Sequence record: OR413581.1
Strand: one strand, 5' to 3'
DNA: 64,000 nt
The stretch's first letter is position 1; every line of letters starts with the position of its first letter. Below the pieces are notes generated by a model. The model ran no database searches, was not told where the DNA came from, and saw nothing but the letters and a program-made list of their open reading frames with translations. The translations under genes and the position numbers were made by a program. Below are positions 917 through 31,636 of this stretch, one piece after another.

Positions 917-3430
917 ATGGAGAACTGGCTGGTCGCTCACGCCGTTAAAAATGCGTGGCAGCGTCCGTACCTCGATGGGGTGTTGAACATTGCGCCTTTT
1001 CGATTAACTGAAAAGACCGGAGCGATCGGGTTTTTCAAGCACGGGCGTAATCCGATTCCTTTACCGGGCGAGGGGTGGTGGCACGCGTTTGTAATTGACA
1101 AGCTCCACCTCAACTACGGCAACTTGAGTATCCCTCCTGAGCGCTGGAAGAAACTTACTACGTGTGTAAATAACTTCCATGCGTGGATGCAGGTGTACAA
1201 CGAAGATGGGACAATTATCCCGTCGAACTCTGTGTATTTCTGGCGGACACTCTCTGGTCAGATTTACATGGCGATTCCGCAAACGGAACGCTACAAGTGG
1301 TTAGACGACACGCCGTGTTATCTACGCATTTATGCTGGTAATGATGGCGGCGAAAACGCTCCTGTTGTTAAACCGACGTTCATCGAACCGTATAATCCGC
1401 CGAACCCACAACAGATCCAGATCGTCTTAGACCGTTATAATCTGTTGAAAGGCCAGAAAATCGGCTATGTCGATTTCTGGGTAAACGGAAAGATGATTGC
1501 TGATCCTAAGCCCGCGGATATCAAAGCATGGGATGATGTTGAAATTCGTGTCGACGGCCGCATTCGTCGTGTAATTGAATACCGTTGTGGGGATTTGCAA
1601 ACGTTCTACTCAACGCTTGACCAAACACGAAAATACCTGCTGCACATTCCAAAAGGGGATGGCATTTGGATTTTCAACAACGACTGTGAAATTCAGTTGT
1701 TGTGGAAAGGCGAAGGGCGTTACTACCACCGCCACCGTCATCAGGCCGTGCGTCAATTGACGTGGAACGATATATCGATTCCGTCGATGCGGATTTCGAA
1801 ATACCGCACCGCTTTCACTAACCCAATGAATGATATCGACGAACTAACGATTCGTTTATTGATACGTGACGATTTCCTTGACCTGAAGCCACTGTATAAC
1901 TCCACCCACACGCACGACCTCTATCGTCTTAGTGACGAGCAGATCATCGGTGCGATGGTGGGGGCAAACTCCAACGTACCAGAGTGGACCGCAGCAGCGC
2001 TCGAGGAATCGGCAGCGAATCGGTTAGCGGCAGCCAAACTCCGGAACATCACACGCGATCTCTGCACTGATGCGTACGGCTACAATGCCGCCGCACGTTA
2101 CAGTGCCGACACTCCACAGCGTCTGGAACTTACATCCGGTGGCTATCGCGGTACTTTGCCCGACTTACTGGCAGCGCTGTCAACTGTATACGAGTACGAT
2201 GCCGATGGGTTGCTGTTAGAACATCACCGTAATGCAGGCTACGATGTTTACATCCCTCGCAATCCAGAAGCACGAATCATCGAGGCTATTGCGGGTGAAG
2301 TCTCGGATGCGGTGAAGATCGTTGACAACGCTCCTGACTTTGAAATTGAGCCAGGTTCAAACGTTGGGTTGTGGATTCGAATGGTCATCGGAGAAGTTCC
2401 AACCAACGACTACTACAAAGCCGAGGAAGGAACGGATTATACTCGCGACGGAAATAAAATCACCTGGACCGTAGATCGGACACGACGTCACCCGACAGTG
2501 ATTTACGACGACTTCCACCTGTTCTTCGAAGTGGATGTTAAGGTGTCGGAAGGTCAGATACGTATTCCGATTGTAGCACGCAACCAAGACGGGCAGCAGC
2601 GCACGCTGTGGCTACCGATGGAAACGGTTGAAGTGTGGTTGAACAACCACCCACTGGTGCACGGTATCGATTACCACACCCGCTGGCCGGAAATTGTGGT
2701 GGTTTGTAAAGCGTGGATGGCGGACGGGGATACAAATAAAGTCTCAGTGCGTTGTCGTGGCGTGACCGGTGAACTCCGTATTCCTAAACACGGTTTCGTG
2801 TCAAGCGGACTGCTGTCTAATAACAGCCAGTTTGATTGCCGTGACGACAAAGTGATTCGTGTCGTGGGTGGCGGTTCACTGCTATTGCGTGACGAAGTCG
2901 TGTTCCGTGAAGACAACACTGTAGGTGTTGACATCGTGCAAGACGGGTTCCCATACTCGGTCGACGATCCGACTATTCCGTTGCGGACGCTGGTAAGCGG
3001 CGATACGTACGACTTGCGCGACACTGCCCGTGATTTGGACACACGCGTCGAGGCTTACCTGTCTAACTGGTTCCCGACACCTCCGCCGGTTAACCCGGTA
3101 CCGTTGCCGTATCTGTATCACCTCTATTCGCCAACCCTGAACAAAATCTTGTGGGACTACTTGCAAGGTATTCTGATTCTGCGGGAAGACGATCCGGAGT
3201 ATCGTATCTCGACGTCACAGCTGGATGACATCATGGAGCGTTATAAAGACCTCCTGCCGTTTGACCCGGCCTATATCGGTTACGATAAAGCGTTTGTGAA
3301 ACTGCATCCGCATGTGAAGTACGAAACGGTAGAAATCAACGAACTTGGCTTTGCCTTCTTAGACCGCGTCAATGAACGTTATCTGAATGGCGAAGTGCAG
3401 CTTAATCAGTATCTGATAATCAAGGGTTAA
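917..3430 (+). CDS. Large virion structural protein (probable baseplate component)
   Basis: 837-aa ORF with GAGG upstream. Its position before the terminase matches the phiKZ-like structural block. Confidence 0.55.
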   Translation: MENWLVAHAVKNAWQRPYLDGVLNIAPFRLTEKTGAIGFFKHGRNPIPLPGEGWWHAFVIDKLHLNYGNLSIPPERWKKLTTCVNNFHAWMQVYNEDGTIIPSNSVYFWRTLSGQIYMAIPQTERYKWLDDTPCYLRIYAGNDGGENAPVVKPTFIEPYNPPNPQQIQIVLDRYNLLKGQKIGYVDFWVNGKMIADPKPADIKAWDDVEIRVDGRIRRVIEYRCGDLQTFYSTLDQTRKYLLHIPKGDGIWIFNNDCEIQLLWKGEGRYYHRHRHQAVRQLTWNDISIPSMRISKYRTAFTNPMNDIDELTIRLLIRDDFLDLKPLYNSTHTHDLYRLSDEQIIGAMVGANSNVPEWTAAALEESAANRLAAAKLRNITRDLCTDAYGYNAAARYSADTPQRLELTSGGYRGTLPDLLAALSTVYEYDADGLLLEHHRNAGYDVYIPRNPEARIIEAIAGEVSDAVKIVDNAPDFEIEPGSNVGLWIRMVIGEVPTNDYYKAEEGTDYTRDGNKITWTVDRTRRHPTVIYDDFHLFFEVDVKVSEGQIRIPIVARNQDGQQRTLWLPMETVEVWLNNHPLVHGIDYHTRWPEIVVVCKAWMADGDTNKVSVRCRGVTGELRIPKHGFVSSGLLSNNSQFDCRDDKVIRVVGGGSLLLRDEVVFREDNTVGVDIVQDGFPYSVDDPTIPLRTLVSGDTYDLRDTARDLDTRVEAYLSNWFPTPPPVNPVPLPYLYHLYSPTLNKILWDYLQGILILREDDPEYRISTSQLDDIMERYKDLLPFDPAYIGYDKAFVKLHPHVKYETVEINELGFAFLDRVNERYLNGEVQLNQYLIIKG

Positions 3431-3432
3431 TC

Positions 3433-5076
3433 ATGGCGAAGATTGCGTCCAAATTAATCGACAAGGATCGCGGGTTCGAAGTCTGGGACCCGAGTGAATT
3501 GTACGAACCAAACAAACCAACAGGTTACGTACCTAACCCACGTGACCTTATCGTGAACGACATGACCTCCGGCTTTGACCGCGTGGTTAGCGTAAACTAT
3601 TCGGTACCGTCGTGGGAAACAGAACCGTTCGGTGGCGTTGGTGTGGCAAACCAAGACGGGCGTCTTAATGGTCACTACCCACTACGCTCTGACAGATATC
3701 GCGTCTACGTGGACAGCACCAAACTTCCACCGACGATGGTTATCGATGATGCCGTCACTTTCAACGGTCCCGATATCGACGGTGTGCGTATCCTGCGTGG
3801 GTCATCTGTAAACGATGATGCGGAAATCCTGTCTGGTTATTACAAAGACGGGGTTCTGAAAAAGAACTATCTGCCGGTGCAGACTATCAGTGCGGCTGAC
3901 GCAGAAACTGTGGTGAAACAAGCGATTCCTGGGAGCTGTCTGGCTGAAGTCAGTAACGGTGAAGAGTGTACTTTCCTGGTTTACTCCGACACCGGTAACG
4001 TTGTTCAGATCGCCCACGGTCACATCATCAAGACCAATCTGGTGATGGCGCAAGAGACTCCGTCTCGCACTGTGCTAGGTATTAAACTGGTTTCACCGTT
4101 CCTGGTAGACGACAATGGTACTACGCTGACGCTGCCGATTAACATCCCGCTGGAATCTATTCCGCTGTGGTGTGACATCCAGTACAGCGACGGAACCAAA
4201 CGCCTACCTATCGATGGTTCGCGTGTGAAGTTTAACGGTCTGCGTAACTCTGGTGCACATGACACGTTTTACATCGCTTCAAACGCCGGTAATGAGTTAC
4301 CTTGCCAGTTAAGCTATCAGTTGGCTCGCGGTGAAACCTACGGTGGTACTGACATTGTTAAAGATACAATTGTCAAAGACTACACCGCTGTAACCGAAAC
4401 AGTCGATGGTGCTTATTCCATGAAGCTGTTTGTGGTTCCGCGTTGGTTGGATGCGAACCGTGGTTATCGTCTGTCGTTCCTGCTGTACAACCTGACACGC
4501 GGCCAAGTCTACGACGCGACCGCAAACATCCAGTACACCACAGGGACTACATTCGACCCACTGTTGATGGGTGTGAAACAGCGTCTGAATGTGCAGGTGG
4601 ATATCAGCAAAGTAAATCCACAATTCCGCGCATTCATCCAGGCGCAGTCTTTCGCCATCACGTTAGTGAACCCAGGTAACGAGTTGAATACCAACTTCCT
4701 TATCGAATACCTGCCTGATGGGCTGGTCTACGGTAATGAAATTTGGGCGGAGTTCAAATACTCTAACGTCAACTACTCCACGCTGAACCTTCGTTGTGGT
4801 TGTGCCTCTAAAGCCGAGTGGCTTAAAGCGTTGTACGAGCCGATTTATCCGCTCTACGATCGTCGTAATGAATCTGAGGCTCCCGAGCCTACACACTTTG
4901 AGGTGCATGTCGGTGGTAAGGTTTACACCCACAGCATCGATGAGTGGTTAAATGAGCAAACGGTAGATTATCGTATCGCTCTGGACGATTCGTTAGTTAT
5001 TCGCTGGATTCGTCGCACTCCTACGGATACGCTTAACCTCGCGGCTACGCCAATGCTGGCGCACCACATCGAGTAA
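3433..5076 (+). CDS. Virion structural protein (beta-rich, probable baseplate component)
   Basis: 547-aa ORF 2 nt after the previous stop; function by synteny. Confidence 0.55.
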   Translation: MAKIASKLIDKDRGFEVWDPSELYEPNKPTGYVPNPRDLIVNDMTSGFDRVVSVNYSVPSWETEPFGGVGVANQDGRLNGHYPLRSDRYRVYVDSTKLPPTMVIDDAVTFNGPDIDGVRILRGSSVNDDAEILSGYYKDGVLKKNYLPVQTISAADAETVVKQAIPGSCLAEVSNGEECTFLVYSDTGNVVQIAHGHIIKTNLVMAQETPSRTVLGIKLVSPFLVDDNGTTLTLPINIPLESIPLWCDIQYSDGTKRLPIDGSRVKFNGLRNSGAHDTFYIASNAGNELPCQLSYQLARGETYGGTDIVKDTIVKDYTAVTETVDGAYSMKLFVVPRWLDANRGYRLSFLLYNLTRGQVYDATANIQYTTGTTFDPLLMGVKQRLNVQVDISKVNPQFRAFIQAQSFAITLVNPGNELNTNFLIEYLPDGLVYGNEIWAEFKYSNVNYSTLNLRCGCASKAEWLKALYEPIYPLYDRRNESEAPEPTHFEVHVGGKVYTHSIDEWLNEQTVDYRIALDDSLVIRWIRRTPTDTLNLAATPMLAHHIE

Positions 5077-5084
5077 CAAACCTT

Positions 5085-5108
5085 CCTCCACCCCTTCGGG
5101 GGTGGAGG
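5085..5108 (+). other. Strong UUCG hairpin without U-tract immediately upstream of the terminase start
   Basis: CCTCCACCCC-TTCG-GGGGTGGAGG, a perfect 10-bp stem; the ATG is at 5121. Confidence 0.6.
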
Positions 5109-5120
5109 TATGGAGATTGT

Positions 5121-7232
5121 ATGATACTGCGAAAAAACGATTGGCGACACTATCCGGGGGCGATTGTTGACGATGTCACACCAAACGTGCACTTCCTTCA
5201 ATTCGCCACAACACTACAAGGATTAGGTGTCCAGCATTGGTACGTCCACCTGGCATTACACAATCCCGAACTCCGTGGTGTTGATCCGTTTAGCCCGGAT
5301 TTAACACTCGAACAAAAAGCGATGATTGTTACGGAGTGTGCGGAAAACCCATGGTACTTCTTCCGTGAGTGTGTCCGGGTCCCTGCGGATGGTGTAAAGA
5401 ACGGGATGCCGTTTCGTCTAGACCGCGGTAACTTTTCGATGTATTGGATTTTCTTCAACAACATTGACGCCGCTATCGAGTTTCTCCGTCAGCATGGTAA
5501 GACTGTCGGGATGTCCGCATTGCTATTGTGGCTGATGCGCTTCCTGGAGAACTCACGTACGATTCTTATCACGAAGGGTCCTGCCCTGCGTGAAGAAACT
5601 ATCAACAAAATGAAACAACTGCGTAACGCGTTACCGGATTATCTCTGGCCTCATCACCCGGACGATCCTGATAACCGTGAGACATTTGCATGTCTAGCGC
5701 AGGGTAACAAACTTATCACCGGCATCGGTCAAAACGATAAGGAAGCTGCGAACGGGGTAGGCCGTGGACTCACAGCCGGACGCCTGTTCTCGGATGAAGG
5801 ACCGTTTACCAACAACATCCACCATATCCTCCCTGCTGCACTAGCATCGGGTACCGCGGCGCGTCGTATTAACGAAGCCGAAGGTGTTCCATACGGCAAC
5901 GTCTTCGCAACAACGCCTGGGGATTTGGCGACAGAAGAAGGCGAGTACATGTACAGCCTGATGACGTCGGGGATTTCGTGGGATGAACGGTATATCGACA
6001 TCCCGACTCGTGCACAACTGATTGACATGATTCGCAAAGGCTCTACTGCGAAGATTCCACGTATCATGTTCTACGTGAAATACAACCACCGCCAACTCGG
6101 TACCACGGACGAAGAACTCGCAGATATGATTGCGAACGCCCCAGGTACACCAGACCAAATCCGCCGTGACTTCGGTGGTGAATGGACAACCGGTGGTTAC
6201 AACAAACCGTTCTCAGGCGATGATGCAAGACGTATGAACGCCTCGCGTATTCGGGCAGCACAGAAAATTATCTCTGCTTCCAACTACGTAACGGATTGGT
6301 ATTACACTGAAGAGCAGATGTTGGTTAAAATGCAAGACCGCCACATCATCGGTTTGGATACTTCCGAAGCCGTGGGACGTGACGCCATTGCCATGTCAAT
6401 CGTCAACTCTGTCACTGCCGAATATGCCGGCAAGCTCACCGTGAACGAAACAAACGTCATCGGGTTTGCGATTCACTTAGCAGACTTCATGATCGAATAT
6501 CCGAACACGGTACTCATTCTGGAACGACGGTCTACCGGCTCCTCGGTAGCAGATGCCATTATACTGCAGCTGCAATCTAAGGTTCGCGATTTGCATCGTC
6601 GTTTGTACGTGAAAGTGACCCAGGATTACTCAAGGAACGATGAACTTTACAAAGAGTTCCATCGTGGCCCTGTGGGCAGTCCAGAGCGCTTCTGGGACAA
6701 ATTCCGTAAATACATCGGTTTCTCAACCGACCAGGATAAACGCCGTAAGTTGTATGGTGAAGTATTTACCACGGCGTTGCGTCTTTCTGCGGACTTACTG
6801 CGGTCAGGCGAATTGATCGACCAAATCCTCGGTCTCGTCGAACGAAACGGACGCATAGACCACCGTGCATCCGGTCACGATGACTTGGTGATATCCTGGC
6901 TTCTGGCAATGTGGTTACTTCTGTTCGGCAACAACTTAGGCCACTACGGTATAAGTAACAGCCGACTGATGATGCGCAACCGCAATATGCTCGGGGGCAT
7001 GGCAGGTGAATTCGATGAAGAGGCTGCAGTCGAGGAAGAAGAAAAGCAACAACAACTGATGGGGCAAATTGAAACGATGATTAGACAGAGTCAAGTTGTA
7101 GCCGACCCGGTACAACAGCTCATGTACAAGAATCGTATTCAAGCGCTCGTCTCTCAACTCAACACTGACGTTCGTAACGTCGCATCGATGGAAAGCTTGA
7201 AAGAGCTAATCCAACGACAGAGGATGAAGTGA
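5121..7232 (+). CDS. terL: Terminase large subunit
   Basis: Walker A RQHGKT, Walker B LFSDEG, RNase H-like nuclease motifs IIGLDTS and GHDDLV; 703 aa. Confidence 0.92.
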   Translation: MILRKNDWRHYPGAIVDDVTPNVHFLQFATTLQGLGVQHWYVHLALHNPELRGVDPFSPDLTLEQKAMIVTECAENPWYFFRECVRVPADGVKNGMPFRLDRGNFSMYWIFFNNIDAAIEFLRQHGKTVGMSALLLWLMRFLENSRTILITKGPALREETINKMKQLRNALPDYLWPHHPDDPDNRETFACLAQGNKLITGIGQNDKEAANGVGRGLTAGRLFSDEGPFTNNIHHILPAALASGTAARRINEAEGVPYGNVFATTPGDLATEEGEYMYSLMTSGISWDERYIDIPTRAQLIDMIRKGSTAKIPRIMFYVKYNHRQLGTTDEELADMIANAPGTPDQIRRDFGGEWTTGGYNKPFSGDDARRMNASRIRAAQKIISASNYVTDWYYTEEQMLVKMQDRHIIGLDTSEAVGRDAIAMSIVNSVTAEYAGKLTVNETNVIGFAIHLADFMIEYPNTVLILERRSTGSSVADAIILQLQSKVRDLHRRLYVKVTQDYSRNDELYKEFHRGPVGSPERFWDKFRKYIGFSTDQDKRRKLYGEVFTTALRLSADLLRSGELIDQILGLVERNGRIDHRASGHDDLVISWLLAMWLLLFGNNLGHYGISNSRLMMRNRNMLGGMAGEFDEEAAVEEEEKQQQLMGQIETMIRQSQVVADPVQQLMYKNRIQALVSQLNTDVRNVASMESLKELIQRQRMK

Positions 7233-12997: not shown

Positions 12998-13073
12998 GGG
13001 GGTATGGCGCAATTGGTAGCGCACCGGTCTCCAAAACCGAAGGTTCGAGGTTCGAAACCTCGTGCCCCCGCCA
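12998..13073 (+). tRNA. trnW: tRNA-Trp (CCA)
   Basis: 76-nt cloverleaf: GGGGGTA/TGCCCCC acceptor, GCGC D stem, loop CT-CCA-AA, T arm CGAGG-TTCGAAA-CCTCG, encoded CCA end. Confidence 0.95.
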
Positions 13074-14161: not shown

Positions 14162-14231
14162 GGCTTTGTAGCTCAGGTAGGTAGAGCAGCCTCTTTGAGG
14201 AAGGTCGCCGGTTCGAGACCGGTCAAAGCAA
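14162..14231 (+). tRNA. tRNA-like element with collapsed anticodon arm (pseudo-tRNA)
   Basis: Canonical D arm (GCTC..GAGC) and T arm (GCCGG-TTCGAGA-CCGGT) and a 6-bp acceptor; the anticodon arm is CCTC-TTT-GAGG, about 4 nt short; no CCA. Confidence 0.7.
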
Positions 14232-14310
14232 GAGCAGCGAAGTTAGAGGAATTAACACCCGACTCATAATCGGATATTTCGACGGTTCGAATCCGTCCGT
14301 TTGCTCGCCC
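14232..14310 (+). tRNA. Atypical tRNA with CAT anticodon (Met or Ile2)
   Basis: Anticodon arm CCCGA-CTCATAA-TCGGA, T arm GACGG-TTCGAAT-CCGTC; the acceptor stem pairs only with a bulge; no clean CCA. Confidence 0.7.
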
Positions 14311-26682: not shown

Positions 26683-28536
26683 ATGGTAAAAATCGTTGAC
26701 TCTAACAACAACGCTCAGCAGAACAACACTCAGACTCAAGACACCGCACCACTGGGCGGTCTGGGCAACGAGACTGTAAAAGTGCAAACTGCTGTGCCGG
26801 GTACTTCTACTGTCAGCCAATTCGATAACGCATTTGGCATCCGCAACATCAGCACCTATGCAATGCACTTCGTCAACCTCCTGGACGAGCTGAAGAAAAG
26901 CAACGAATACCTCAACGCATTCCGCTGGGGCACCATCGCCGGCGTGGGTAACGAAATGGGTTCCGCGGCGTATGTCGCAGGCCAATGGCAGGGCCACTGG
27001 CTGTACGGTATTATCTTCTTTGAACGCGGTCAGTCTCTGCGTCTGAAAGAAACTACCAACAACGGCCAGGAAGACTACTACACCATCACTGAACTGTTCA
27101 ACAAAGACGTGCTGGCAGTAGTACAGAAAAACATCATGGAAGCGCATGGTCTGACCAATGCGAACTTCATGATCATCAACTCCGTACCAGACCTGGGTAA
27201 AGTTCTGGATGCTGAGTGGGCACGTACTCTGATGGGTCAGATGATGATGGGCATCTTCGGTCGTATCGCAGGCTACCTGGGTACGCTGAACCTGCGTAAA
27301 CATGACCGTTATCAGGCTGCAGTAATGCCGCTGGAAGATGGTGCGGTTGTGGATGCTAACGGCCACGCACAACGTGCTGATTTCGCAATCACCGTTGAGC
27401 ACAGCCCAAGCAACGTATCCGACGCCACTCCGACTCTGCTGGACACCAATCAGGTACAGGTGTATCCGCGTGTATCCGGTACTGGTTTCGTCAACATGCG
27501 TTTCACCGGTCAGAAGCCTGTCGTTAACGGCGTCTACGACCTGAAACAGCTGCAGGCTGAAATCGTAGTAAGTCTGGTCGATTCTCAAACTGAAGGTGCA
27601 ATGGCACCGTATGAACGTCAACTGCTGCTGCTGGCTGCATTTGCAGAAATCGCGGCAATCGGTGGCTGGCGTGACCTGTTTGTGAAACGTCTGAACAAAC
27701 AAGATCGCAAGTTCTCCCGTGTGGCAGAATACCTGTCCTGGGGTGCTGACGCTCGTCCTGATGTATCCAAAATCGACGGTAGCCGTGAAGCTATCGAAGG
27801 TTGCCTGGATATGTTCGCACCGCGTGAAGCAGCACTGGTAGTTAGCCATCGTGCCGGTAACGGTCTGGGTGGTCTGTCTACTATGCTGTCTGAAATTGCG
27901 GTCGGTTACGACAACTCTCTGAAACAGCTGCTCGCTATTCTGAATTCCATGTCCCCGCGTGATCAGAACGGCGAAGTTGTTGCAGCGACCAGCTTCACTG
28001 CAGTATTTGCTTCTGCACTGAAAGCACAGCTGGGCGATGCCTTCAATGGTACCATCCATTGCAGCCACATCGTGAAAGCAGCCGTACCGACTGTTTCCGG
28101 TGTTTACACCGGTACTGCACAGAAACGTAGCTTCCAGGATATGGACCTGATTTCCGTTGTTACCAAACTGGGTGATAACGCGAACGACGTCTATAGCTAC
28201 CTGAACGCACAGTCCTACAGCCACCGTGAACTGAACGAGCGTCAACAGCGTATCTACATGCTGAAACTGGCCGCTTCTCTGTTCGCATCCAAAGCACCGC
28301 AAGCTACCGGTGAATCTCTGGATATGGCTATCAACCCGATCTTCGGTAAATGCCTGCTGGACTTCGTCCGTAACAACTGCACCTGGTCTATGACTGGTGT
28401 AAATGCCTACAACACGATGGCGACCTCTCTGTTCTTCAACAACGGTGGGGAAGACTTCACGCTGTCTGGCAACGGCCTGTCTGCAAGCGGTTCCGATTTC
28501 GGTCTGGGCGTGTCTCTGAGCAACTTCAAACTGTAA
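26683..28536 (+). CDS. chmA: Chimallin (phage nuclear shell protein)
   Basis: 617 aa with strong high-expression codon bias, tandem promoters and its own terminator; lies immediately upstream of the nvRNAP beta-prime N subunit, as phiKZ gp54-gp55 do. Identified by synteny and size. Confidence 0.8.
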   Translation: MVKIVDSNNNAQQNNTQTQDTAPLGGLGNETVKVQTAVPGTSTVSQFDNAFGIRNISTYAMHFVNLLDELKKSNEYLNAFRWGTIAGVGNEMGSAAYVAGQWQGHWLYGIIFFERGQSLRLKETTNNGQEDYYTITELFNKDVLAVVQKNIMEAHGLTNANFMIINSVPDLGKVLDAEWARTLMGQMMMGIFGRIAGYLGTLNLRKHDRYQAAVMPLEDGAVVDANGHAQRADFAITVEHSPSNVSDATPTLLDTNQVQVYPRVSGTGFVNMRFTGQKPVVNGVYDLKQLQAEIVVSLVDSQTEGAMAPYERQLLLLAAFAEIAAIGGWRDLFVKRLNKQDRKFSRVAEYLSWGADARPDVSKIDGSREAIEGCLDMFAPREAALVVSHRAGNGLGGLSTMLSEIAVGYDNSLKQLLAILNSMSPRDQNGEVVAATSFTAVFASALKAQLGDAFNGTIHCSHIVKAAVPTVSGVYTGTAQKRSFQDMDLISVVTKLGDNANDVYSYLNAQSYSHRELNERQQRIYMLKLAASLFASKAPQATGESLDMAINPIFGKCLLDFVRNNCTWSMTGVNAYNTMATSLFFNNGGEDFTLSGNGLSASGSDFGLGVSLSNFKL

Positions 28537-28565
28537 TCGAATCGGTTACTGAGTAGTTAGGAAAC

Positions 28566-28603
28566 GGACGGGGGCTAACGCCTCCGTCCTTCCCTCTTTT
28601 TTT
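28566..28603 (+). terminator. Rho-independent terminator
   Basis: GGACGGGGGC-TAAC-GCCTCCGTCC followed by a T-rich tract. Confidence 0.75.
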
Positions 28604-28618
28604 GTTGAGGTTGACAGA

Positions 28619-29986
28619 GTGAGAAAGGTACCAAAATTCTACGGAATATCCGGCCGGTTGGTTAGTCAGGATAACTATTTGTCCGATTTGCAAATAGAAG
28701 CTGCTGCCAAAGGTATTAAACCACCCACTATTATTAACGATGTCGCCGTTAACGGGGATGCGATCGAGGTTGCTGAACTTATCGATCGCATGGTACAGAA
28801 CAGAATCGTTGACGAAGAACTGAACTCTGCACCGATTTGTAGTTTGGATTGTCCGGCACCGATCGCGCATCGTTACAATCTCGGTTGTAAGTGTCCGACG
28901 TGTGGCTATGTTGTAACTGAACATCGAATTGAATCCGATGTCTGGTTACGTGCACCTGATGAAATGGGTAACTTCGTCAACCCACGATTCTGGGCAATGT
29001 TCAATGCTTTCTTTAATAGCAAGTTGAAGAAGTTTGAACGTAACAAGGTCACTATCGAACGCGGTAATGACTTGATGATGTGGATGATTGACCCGTATTA
29101 CCGTATAGAAGAACCAGACGGTAAACGCGCACATGCTGTGAAACGTGTATTGGAAGAACATGGTTTCGTTCGTGGCTTGCGCAATCTGGTTGATAACCAC
29201 GTTAGTATCTTTAACATCCTTACCACGCCAGAAGCCTGGAAGGAAATCTTCGCACCTAATCGGCATAACGCCGCTGAAGGTGAACGCTTACGTTTACAAT
29301 GGAAGGAGCTATTCGAAACACAACGCCACGCATTCTTCCCAAGACACTTACCGTTAATCTCCTCTAAGCTTATTGTTACTGAGGAAGGTCGACGTGGTGT
29401 CATGGTAGACCCAGTGTTCACGGGTGCTATTGACGCGGTGAAAAATATCGCGTTGCTCTATACGCGGCGTAAAGCGATCGAACCACGTTTTCTGATTAGT
29501 CGCGCTTTGAAGGCGAACCGTCAGTTAACGTACTTCCACATGGACTTCCGTCGTGAGTCTATGGAAGGTAAACCGGGTGACTATCGTGCGAAATTGGGTT
29601 CTACCCATATCCCGTTCGGTGGTCGTGCAACCATCTCACCTATCTCAGAACCACACGATGCCTGGAAGTTAAAAGCACCATGGCGTTGGATGGTTGGGTT
29701 GATGTCGACCCACATCGAGAACAAACTGCTACGACGGGGTTATTCGTCACGGCAATGTGAGCGTATCGTTGCAAAAGCGGCAATGCAGTATGACCCGCTT
29801 GTAGATGAAATCTTTAAAGAACTGATTCGTGAATCCCCAGGCGGTCTTGGGATCATGGTCATACCGTTACGTAACCCAACGCTGGTACAGTTGTCTATTC
29901 AAACGCTGTACATCGATGAAGTTGTTACCGATGTTAACCAGTGTTCGCTGCGTATCTCTGACCGTGTGATCAAGATGGCTAACGGT
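28619..29986 (+). CDS. rpoC: Non-virion RNA polymerase beta-prime N-terminal subunit, exon 1
   Basis: Zn-finger CSLDC...CKCPTCG, GKPGDYR, RNPTL motif; ends ...KMANG at the group I 5' splice site. Confidence 0.85.
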
Positions 29987-30342
29987 TCGAAAAGAGCCCC
30001 ATCGGACGGGAAACCTCTGATGCGTATTCTCCTGAAATGCTGGGAAACCCTAAAGCGTATCTACCAGAAATGGGGACGAAAGTCTGAAACAACAGATACG
30101 ATGACCTACGCTAAACAATACTGCTAAGGGTTGTGTTAATGGGTAATCAGCAGCGAAGCCTCGTGAGAGGAACGTTCAACGACTATCGCTGAAATGCGAG
30201 TAGGGGTCCCAGTGGACTTCGAAGTGGGAGAACACCTAAGGCGAAAGCTATGGTGAAGATATAGTCTGTGCCTTATCGAGAGATAAGGAGGGTGTCTTAG
30301 CACACCTGCTGTATACGGAAACGGTATACAGTGGACAAACAG
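29987..30342 (+). mobile_element. Group I self-splicing intron without ORF (356 nt)
   Basis: P AAATGCTGGGAAA 30035-47, Q AATCAGCAGC 30145-54, R GTTCAACGACTAT 30174-86, S AAGATATAGTC 30256-66; P1 GGU|UC-GAAAA-GAGCC with the U.G wobble; terminal G at 30342; splicing restores the frame. Confidence 0.92.
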
Positions 30343-30570
30343 GATTTTGATGGTGACCAGTTCCAGGTACGTTTGCCAGTCGATGAAACTGAGATGAAGT
30401 TGGCGCTCCAATTCCGTCCAGATAACGGCTTTATGTCTTCTACTGATGTGGACCGCGTAGAACACGGCATGGTTTTACATAACGAGCTAATCAGTATGCA
30501 GAACCAGTTCCTTATTGAAGCAGATGAGGATGATGAAGAAGGCATTCCGTTGGAAGCGGTGATGGGCTAA
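30343..30570 (+). CDS. rpoC: Non-virion RNA polymerase beta-prime N-terminal subunit, exon 2 (catalytic DFDGD)
   Basis: Begins GAT TTT GAT GGT GAC; the spliced product is 531 aa with NGDFDGD. Confidence 0.88.
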   Translation, partial: DFDGDQFQVRLPVDETEMKLALQFRPDNGFMSSTDVDRVEHGMVLHNELISMQNQFLIEADEDDEEGIPLEAVMG

Positions 30571-30583
30571 TAGGAGTATTGTA

Positions 30584-31165
30584 ATGTGGCTACAAGGTAG
30601 CACGGTGTGGACGAAACAGACCGAAGGTAGCGGGGCACTCAGCGTATTCAAAGAATCGTTTTCGCTGTCTAGCCTGGCACCCGATCTCGTTGACCGTGTA
30701 AAAGAACATTGTCAGGACTTAATCTCACTGGAGCGTTTCCGTGAAACATTCAGTACCGCACGTAAATTACGTTATAGCGATGCGGTAGAGATGGTAAGAC
30801 AGATCGAAGAGTTGGGTGAATTCCAGTTCGCCAATGCTGCTTTACAGCCATTCCTCGTTGCCATGCCGGAATATCGTAAGTTGTATAATGACGGTATGGC
30901 GACTGGTTATGAGAACGGCTTTTCGCGGTTGGATGTGTTCAAAGGCAATGCGTATATGCGTACCGATGACCACTTCCGCGAAGCAACATCGGGCATTTCG
31001 ACGAAGTACGATGAAGATAAGATTTGGCAATGGGCTACCAATGAAGATCGTGCAGTACGACTGAGTCGAATCGATAAAGTGGATATTCAACTTAACTGGG
31101 CACGCATGTCAGCTTTCGACTGGGAAGATGGTGATCCCTGTTCGGAACTTGGCGCGACGTGTTAA
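30584..31165 (+). CDS. Conserved jumbo-phage hypothetical protein
   Basis: 193 aa with AGGAG SD. Confidence 0.8.
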   Translation: MWLQGSTVWTKQTEGSGALSVFKESFSLSSLAPDLVDRVKEHCQDLISLERFRETFSTARKLRYSDAVEMVRQIEELGEFQFANAALQPFLVAMPEYRKLYNDGMATGYENGFSRLDVFKGNAYMRTDDHFREATSGISTKYDEDKIWQWATNEDRAVRLSRIDKVDIQLNWARMSAFDWEDGDPCSELGATC

Positions 31166-31210: not shown

Positions 31211-31636
31211 ATGCAGCATCCTATATTGGCGTATATCGAGGGCTTGGCAGCACGGTATCGATACCGACCATTACCCAAGAAAGTACGTGAAGAAGCTTTG
31301 TCAGTTTATCAGCAACACTTAAACGGGTTCGATAAGGTAAGGGCTGCCACAATAGGTGGCGTGTCTGTGTGCCTACGTTGGAACCGTGTGGTGGTTGGTG
31401 ATTATGGTGCGTATCTCGAGATAGATGAGAAGGATCTGCTCGTTGGATTGGATGTGCCTCCTGAACAAGCCTGGCGGTTAGACGAAGAGTATATCGCTGG
31501 CCGTAAGCTGAGTATCAAATATCATTGGTTAACATTTCGGGGTGTAAAAGTTTACCATCAAGTCGACACCGTTAAGTATGCGGACTATCGACCGGGCAAA
31601 TATTACATTTCCGTCCTTGAATTTGACAGGAGCTAA
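31211..31636 (+). CDS. Hypothetical protein
   Basis: 141-aa ORF between a terminator and the next gene. Confidence 0.75.
   Translation: MQHPILAYIEGLAARYRYRPLPKKVREEALSVYQQHLNGFDKVRAATIGGVSVCLRWNRVVVGDYGAYLEIDEKDLLVGLDVPPEQAWRLDEEYIAGRKLSIKYHWLTFRGVKVYHQVDTVKYADYRPGKYYISVLEFDRS

Follow-up and report, generated by a model that had tools for sequence, protein, structure and literature searches.

Group I introns of subgroup IA in phages include those of T4 td, nrdB and sunY and the SPO1 DNA polymerase intron with its endonuclease I-HmuI. They carry P7.1 and P7.2 between P7 and P3', are inserted in catalytic motifs of essential nucleic-acid enzymes and optionally hold an endonuclease ORF in a peripheral loop. 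In jumbo phages, introns have been predicted in phiKZ gp55/56, gp72 and gp179 (PMC11512511, PMC10914365), were indicated in 201phi2-1 by earlier proteomic analyses and two spliced reads (PMC11512511), and have been studied functionally in PhiPA3 (PMC11620839). PhiPA3 gp210 is an HNH nicking endonuclease that serves phage–phage competition, an activity demonstrated experimentally (PMC11620839). In a long-read transcriptome, splicing was not seen at the predicted phiKZ introns under the conditions of that study (PMC10914365). We found no literature specific to introns of SPN3US-like phages or to the combination of DFDGD with a group I intron. Introns in jumbo-phage polymerase genes are already known, and the Seoulvirus intron is a further case, for which we found no descriptive paper.

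The DNA analysed, termed the window, is a stretch of 64,000 nt. Over positions 28600-30600, the window matches Salmonella phage SPLA3 (OR413581.1) with 100% identity and unchanged coordinates; this phage is a Seoulvirus, an SPN3US-like jumbo phage. An earlier note, made from the sequence, had placed an ORF-less group I intron in the polymerase catalytic motif of this phage. From the comparisons below, 29987-30342 is very probably a functional, endonuclease-less, IA-like group I intron that separates the Gly codon of N-G-DFDGD from the first Asp codon. The interrupted gene is arranged as follows.

28619..29986, + strand: exon 1, 456 codons, GTG start as in SPN3US_0023, co-linear with intron-less SPN3US_0023
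29987..30342, + strand: predicted group I intron, 356 nt, without endonuclease ORF, subgroup IA-like (Rfam 68.9 bits; exact indel; compensatory changes; MFE z-score -5.2)
30125..30127, + strand: in-frame TAA, ending unspliced translation after 46 intron-encoded residues
30343..30570, + strand: exon 2, 75 codons plus stop, opening GAT TTT GAT GGT GAC

Rfam model RF00028 matched 29967-30288 on the + strand over its full length (1-253) with 68.9 bits and an E value of 2e-15, the gathering score being 50 bits. This was the sole group I match of Rfam in the 64-kb window, even at a permissive E<=0.1. The borders were fixed by comparison with intron-less phages. In the alignment to SPN3US, window 28500-29985 corresponds to 1401-2886 of the SPN3US locus (L002) and window 30343-30700 to 2888-3245, so that exactly 356 nt, 29987-30342, are extra in SPLA3. 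The insert length at this point was 0 in all five intron-less Seoulvirus alleles read in detail. Excision of 29987-30342 joins ATG GCT AAC GGT, the 3' end of exon 1, to GAT TTT GAT GGT GAC in frame. The spliced product is 531 aa long and co-linear with SPN3US_0023, a single 531-codon ORF reading ...RVIKMANGDFDGDQFQV...; the five intron-less alleles read ...KMANG-DFDGDQ... in frame, and N-G-DFDGD occurs also in Erwinia phage phiEaH2. N-G-DFDGD is the native sequence of the SPLA3 lineage.

The last exon base, U29986, is the 5' splice-site base and pairs with G29996 in a 5-bp P1, and the intron ends with G30342. The segment combines the hallmarks of a group I intron: the Rfam score, a P3-P8 core with the P3-P7 pseudoknot, the U-G site, the terminal G and a restored frame. 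The SPLA3 intron contains no endonuclease ORF, its P1 loop being 5 nt long, and mechanical antisense ORFs and the read-through tail of the intron had no Pfam matches. It lacks the homing endonuclease of its own that marks a mobile intron; the introns of relatives do encode one. The earlier note had read this locus correctly. The Rfam search bore out a group I intron, and no endonuclease ORF is present in it; the borders given were exact to the base, since intron-less Seoulvirus alleles lack precisely this block; the junction AAC GGT to GAT TTT GAT GGT GAC, giving N-G-DFDGD, recurs in SPN3US_0023; and the core elements, P1 U.G site and terminal G that it had pointed out were located as U29986-G29996, G30342 and the P4 (P/Q) and P7 (R/S) pairings. 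Its 502-aa unspliced product without the catalytic aspartates likewise stands, ORF 28619-30127 being read through to the TAA.

By homology, the interrupted gene is the ortholog of phiKZ gp55, the N-terminal subunit of non-virion RNA polymerase beta'. The intron-less protein matched PDB 7OGP chain A, a phiKZ non-virion RNAP subunit, with an E value of 5e-39, and in the same PDB search cellular beta' subunits matched around the active-site domain. PhiPA3 gp054, annotated as similar to phiKZ gp055, is 29% identical to the host protein (E 7e-48), and its ...APNADFDGDQ aligns over ...MANGDFDGDQ. The gene matched phrog_2987 in PHROGs (E 8e-180), and Pfam RNA_pol_Rpb1_2 covered residues 414-471 at a sub-threshold 20.4 bits (cut-off 25.3 bits). 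It has the gp55 homology and, once spliced, the DFDGD metal-binding loop expected of the gp55 family; the Mg-binding aspartates are encoded at the start of exon 2. The deposited name of the phiKZ chain in 7OGP, 'PHIKZ055 ... PHIKZ056.1', suggests that the product of the phiKZ ortholog combines ORFs that had been annotated separately. The start codon of exon 1 differs among records: SPN3US, EC001 and 1252 use the GTG equivalent to 28619, and SPLA3, SPLA5c, JN03 and SaP7 start at an ATG 171 nt downstream (28790).

The unspliced ORF, 28619-30127, comprises 456 exon codons and 46 intron codons and does not contain DFDGD. Unspliced RNA would yield only this 502-aa protein, and a working non-virion polymerase would therefore require splicing. 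The non-virion RNAP is reported to transcribe the late genes of phiKZ (PMC5105663). Since the interrupted gene is the ortholog of gp55, we infer, in line with the earlier note, that middle and late transcription depends on splicing.

To describe the putative ribozyme, the following helices were assigned (a slash marks the splice site).

29984..29998, + strand: P1, GGU/UC (29984-29988) with GAGCC (29994-29998), loop GAAAA
30000..30022, + strand: P2 hairpin, CAUCGGA with UCUGAUG, capped by a GAAA tetraloop
30027-30033, + strand: P3 5' strand (Rfam consensus, helix table)
30038-43 with 30147-52, + strand: P4 (helix table, RNAalifold pair counts)
30048-50 with 30141-43, + strand: P5 (helix table, RNAalifold pair counts)
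30056-62 with 30094-100, + strand: P5a (helix table)
30064-73, + strand: P5b (helix table)
30075-84, + strand: P5c (helix table)
30104-07 with 30128-31, + strand: P5d, conserved loop GCUAAACAAUACUGCUAA
30153-30175, + strand: P6/P6a (Rfam consensus, helix table)
30181-85 with 30262-66, + strand: P7, GACUA with UAGUC, pseudoknot with P3 (Rfam alignment)
30186-30199, + strand: P7.1, covarying in SaP7, Raoultella and Klebsiella
30205-30218, + strand: P7.2, covarying in SaP7, Raoultella and Klebsiella
30226-32, + strand: P3' (Rfam alignment)
30233-55, + strand: P8 (Rfam alignment), J8/7 being AAGAUA
30271-88, + strand: P9, GAGA loop
30291-306, + strand: P9.1 (helix table)
30309-31, + strand: P9.2 (helix table)
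after P9.2, to 30342, + strand: tail UGGACAAACA and terminal G30342, conserved in homologs

Of these elements, P3, P4, P5, P6/P6a, P7, P8 and J8/7 follow the Rfam consensus. The long P5 extension consists of P5a-d, with two GAAA-capped hairpins and the conserved loop, and the tail, ...GGACAA.CAG up to the splice site, is kept in SaP7, Raoultella and contigs L028 and L038. The extra helices P7.1 and P7.2 between P7 and P3' point to subgroup IA. By itself, thermodynamic MFE folding of the whole intron fails to give the complete group I fold; the MFE z-score is -5.2.

The P1 aligned by Rfam itself, exon GAUGG with CCAUC, was rejected because CCAUC is the 5' strand of the covarying P2 and because the 5-bp junction P1 covaries in five lineages. 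The exon GAUGG (29974-29978) is complementary to that P2 strand (29999-30003), and this alternative exon–intron pairing could compete with P2. The same pairing, as Rfam aligned it, would suit a regulatory intron whose splicing efficiency times or gates the non-virion polymerase, as would the in-frame stop 138 nt into the intron, since ribosomes reading in would unwind P1-P5. Separation of transcription in the phage nucleus from ribosomes would help splicing, and nucleus-forming phages uncouple transcription from translation (PMC12908238). Most close relatives nonetheless lack the intron, so that a regulatory need is not evident, and we consider this role very unlikely.

The preferred reading, a functional group I intron, predicts a structure maintained by selection. 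Homologous introns occur in the same gene of SaP7, Proteus phage 7, Raoultella phage VB_ZK_P1 and Klebsiella phage phiKp_32, as well as of Vibrio phage 2 TSL-2019, Photobacterium phage PDCC-1, Pseudomonas phage EL and three IMG/VR contigs. Pairs were counted in an RNAalifold alignment fold and in a separate helix-by-helix table made by script. With seven homologs, RNAalifold gave 64 pairs, 27 of which showed a compensatory double change in at least one sequence. According to the helix table, P2, P3, P4, P5a, P5c, P6, P7, P7.1, P8 and P9 keep their pairing despite different sequences. In P2, all nine pairs are kept in six of seven homologs, with double changes; in P7, all five are paired in all seven homologs, with GACCG/UGGUC and GGCCA/UGGUC as variants of GACUA/UAGUC. 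Similarly, P5a is CGUAUCU/AGAUACG in one form and CUCGUUC/GAACGAG in another, and P3 is either UUCUCCU/GGGAGAA or UUUCCCU/GGGGAAA. The clearest case of covariation is P1, in which the guide tracks the exon codon (GGU, GCU or GAU) in five lineages:

SPLA3: GGU/UC with GAGCC
SaP7: GGU/AA with UUGCC
Raoultella: GCU/AA with UUGGC
Vibrio: GAU/AG with CUGUC
EL: GCU/UAACAAU with AUUGUUA-AA-GGC

P1 folds as predicted in SPLA3 and in the Raoultella and Vibrio homologs. Among the SPLA3-type copies compared, five of the six, substitutions fell in loops or changed A-U to G-U, the exception being one terminal pair. Because the structure is kept by compensatory changes, and because substitutions among close copies are of the loop or G-U kind, we conclude that the SPLA3 intron is probably a working ribozyme. 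Against this, the exon contributes no more than 3 pairs to P1, the best P10, UUUU/AAAA, is weak, and position +6 is C rather than U in three intron-plus phages. The MFE fold and the long-read result for phiKZ also run counter to it.

Group I chemistry suggests how the intron would be removed. The primary transcript would fold so that the guide GAGCC (29994-29998) pairs with GGU/UC, presenting the U29986-G29996 wobble. Exogenous guanosine would attack after U29986, the terminal G30342 would dock in P7, and the exons would be ligated. The predicted product is a 531-aa subunit with a layout identical to that of intron-less SPN3US, whose junction would give the tryptic peptide MANGDFDGDQFQVR. The P1 loop that in relatives holds an I-HmuI-like HNH homing endonuclease is 5 nt long in the SPLA3 copy.

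GenBank records do not reflect this arrangement. In seven intron-bearing feature tables the gene appears as two separate CDSs, or the second is dropped, and none carries an intron feature; the eighth record, Lh1B, bears the same two-CDS labels in the match table. The statement of the earlier note that ORF callers split the gene was well founded. Taken at face value, two CDSs could mean a dead intron in a split gene, with the 502-aa piece assembling with a small C-terminal piece that carries DFDGD. Natural splits occur elsewhere in the RNAP subunits of these phages (PMC7598289), and an ORF of 79 aa from GTG 30331 would include DFDGD. This GTG, however, lies inside the P9.2 stem, with no obvious Shine-Dalgarno sequence on reading the upstream bases, and the annotated second CDS (ATG 30394) lacks DFDGD altogether. 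Moreover, the active-site loop would be severed by such a split and gain 46 residues unrelated to it, and the intact ribozyme core shows structural constraint. We regard a split gene as barely credible.

With a spliced gene as the preferred reading, six Seoulvirus records with the ORF-less intron, two with the HNH intron and several distant jumbo-phage records misannotate the catalytic subunit as two genes, sometimes losing DFDGD entirely from the annotation of an essential polymerase subunit. Proteomics databases, pangenome counts and knock-down designs inherit this error.

The SPLA3 intron is not unusual: the same family occurs at this motif in many nucleus-forming phages, phiKZ included. 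Across these phages we found four insertion points inside the NADFDGD codons:

N/A: phiKZ type
NA/D or NG/D: SPLA3, SaP7, EL, intron 1 of Raoultella/Klebsiella, contigs L028 and L038
NAD/F: Vibrio, Photobacterium, contig L030
DFDG/D: second insert of Raoultella/Klebsiella, leaving a 12-nt micro-exon

The codon before each insertion ends in T. The family to which the SPLA3 intron belongs is directed at the NADFDGD codons of this gene throughout the nucleus-forming jumbo phages. In the gp55 ortholog of phage KTN4, of the phiKZ species, Rfam detects two group I introns, scoring 87.5 and 74.7 bits; they lie at 2422-3665 and 3777-5147 of the KTN4 locus (L064), each with an ORF of ~270-330 aa. One follows FHRN (FHRN/PTLQ) upstream, and the other lies at N/ADFDGD, one codon upstream of the SPLA3 site. 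In Raoultella phage VB_ZK_P1 (L005), intron 1 spans 2483-2847 (Rfam 63.8 bits) after ...TTC AAT GCT. It is followed by the micro-exon GAT TTT GAC GGT (2848-2859) and by a second insert of 311 nt (2860-3170), after which the frame resumes with GAT ACC ATG...; Klebsiella phage phiKp_32 (L008) has the same insert coordinates. Rfam gave no match for 2860-3170, and this second insert appears to be a presumed group I intron from its P1-like GGU/AA...UUGCC, terminal G and frame restoration only. The intron of Vibrio phage 2 TSL-2019 (L006, 2455-2846) lies at NAD/FDGD, with a guide that matches GAU, and the same site is used in PDCC-1 (L009) and in contig L030. This Vibrio-type site is one codon downstream, so that the sites of homologous introns differ by 3 nt from one phage group to another. 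The 18-nt P5-loop motif, GCTAAMCAATAMYGCTAA, was present in 44 IMG/VR viral-contig loci (L020-L063), six of which adjoin a gp55-like gene, and occurred in two copies each in EL and PDCC-1; these counts suggest that the intron subfamily resides in other genes as well.

A survey of relatives for intron-minus and endonuclease-bearing alleles, proposed in the earlier note, found both types within Seoulvirus. The ORF-less intron is present in six phages, SPLA3, SPLA5c, 1252, EC001, Lh1B and JN03, which were independently isolated and whose described hosts are Salmonella or E. coli. At least 14 relatives among the matches listed are intron-less. SaP7 and Proteus phage 7 have a 1404-nt intron at the identical insertion point, as does SPFM1 once its scrambled record is reordered. 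In that record (L004, LR535901.1 222955-229014), the 60-base lines stand in reversed order and matches fall into 26-28 backward-running 60-nt pieces; with the line order reversed, a single 5973-nt alignment to SaP7 is obtained at 92% identity, HNH-bearing intron included. The same line reversal probably affects SPFM5, 7, 8, 10, 14 and 15.

The larger intron encodes an HNH+NUMOD1 protein of ~290-330 aa in its P1 loop, which is homologous to the intron ORFs of EL (E 4e-26) and of the phiKZ type (E 2e-18) and to I-HmuI (PDB 1U3E; E 4e-4). Recent loss of the endonuclease ORF from a SaP7-type intron was considered as the origin of the SPLA3 copy and rejected: the SPLA3 and SaP7 intron cores are 76% identical, whereas the exons are 98% identical. 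The two introns are for this reason taken as separate lineages at one site. The distance between their cores approximates that of either to the introns of contigs whose host protein is <70% identical.

The flanking exon sequence correlates with intron state. The site is preceded by GCT AAC GGT in all seven intron-plus alleles and by GCA AAT GGA in all five intron-minus Seoulvirus alleles. The three differences, at -7, -4 and -1, are synonymous, and that at -1 removes the U required there. AAC GG(T/C) is retained in intron-less relatives from outside the species. Beyond -7 and +6, exon SNPs are mosaic and unlinked to intron state, and no long co-conversion tracts were found in the exon polymorphisms compared. 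This pattern would fit either very short co-conversion tracts or selected endonuclease-resistant empty sites.

These alleles bear on what the SPLA3 intron does, a question compatible with its being a functional ribozyme. Occupancy might protect the site against SaP7-type HNH endonucleases, or the intron might move in trans by means of the enzyme of a co-infecting phage. Both possibilities, raised in the earlier note, gain plausibility from the I-HmuI-like HNH endonuclease that a different intron encodes at this site in SaP7 and Proteus phage 7, whose exons are 98% identical. An HNH+NUMOD1 ORF lies in an intron at exactly this site in SaP7, Proteus phage 7 and reordered SPFM1, homologous to the EL and phiKZ-type intron endonucleases and to I-HmuI, and the 7/7 and 5/5 division of flanks is in keeping with resistance of empty sites. 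For PhiPA3/phiKZ, one altered base located 2 nt upstream of the insertion point is enough to block gp210, the endonuclease of the intron (PMC11620839). Nevertheless, three linked changes within 7 nt of the site would travel by co-conversion anyway, the intron-minus alleles may share one ancestor, and U at -1 is required for splicing regardless of protection. Nickases of the I-HmuI type, furthermore, depend mostly on one exon for recognition and are able to nick DNA that contains the intron, so that occupancy may not protect. We consider protection or trans mobility possible but doubtful.

With similar reserve, we tentatively propose that the 21 nt of NADFDGD have long been a battleground of one I-HmuI-like endonuclease/intron family, in which the SPLA3 intron might be an 'immunity allele' kept by blocking a rival endonuclease in co-infection. 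The proposal is based on the four insertion points, with the 12-nt micro-exon in Raoultella/Klebsiella, on two unrelated intron lineages at the same site within one phage species, and on the silent trio at -7, -4 and -1 fixed in intron-less alleles. The three allelic states, empty, ORF-less intron and HNH-bearing intron, occur in phages that are otherwise ~98% identical. They provide a natural system in easily handled Salmonella and E. coli phages for testing protection by occupancy or by silent sites against intron endonucleases, and such tests would extend the PhiPA3/phiKZ result.

Several other features of the window were recorded.

12998-13070, 14162-14231 and 14234-14305, + strand: three tRNA genes by Rfam, the latter two adjacent and weak (37.1 and 30.6 bits)
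26683-28536, + strand: 617-aa gene, phrog_8316, directly upstream of the polymerase gene
31211-31636, + strand: 141-aa gene, two genes downstream of the polymerase gene

The position of the 617-aa gene is that of the nuclear-shell protein gene in PhiPA3 and the Vibrio phage. Sequence comparison did not identify it as such: BLASTP with PhiPA3 gp053 yielded E 0.8 and no PDB chain matched, leaving position as the sole support. The 141-aa gene is a presence/absence polymorphism, being present in SPLA3, SPLA1a and SPFM17 and absent at the same place in SPN3US, EC001, JN03, 1252, SPLA5c and SaP7.

A close counterpart of the SPLA3 intron is that of SaP7 and Proteus phage 7, from the same Seoulvirus species group. 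It shares the insertion point, the 5' flank GCT AAC GGT and the overall fold, but is 1404 nt long, carries an HNH+NUMOD1 ORF in the P1 loop, has a core that is 76% identical, and has AA/UU rather than UC/GA as the intron-side pairs of P1. The phiKZ gp55 introns, with gp56/gp57-type HNH ORFs and read here in KTN4, lie in the same gene and are likewise group I by Rfam, one of them in the NADFDGD codons, and the phiKZ-type intron endonuclease is a homolog of that of SaP7. By contrast, the phiKZ type combines an ORF-containing intron at N/ADFDGD with a second, upstream intron, whereas SPLA3 has a single ORF-less intron at NG/DFDGD. The PhiPA3 gp210 intron (Birkholz et al., Science 2024; PMC11620839) is also a group I intron at the active-site aspartates of a jumbo-phage multisubunit RNAP; it encodes an endonuclease and interrupts the virion RNAP beta subunit, whereas that of SPLA3 is in the non-virion beta'. 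Compared with the IA introns of T4 and SPO1, the SPLA3 intron differs in its host gene and in having a large extension of P5, the 18-nt loop of which is conserved; its relatives carry their ORF in the P1 loop.
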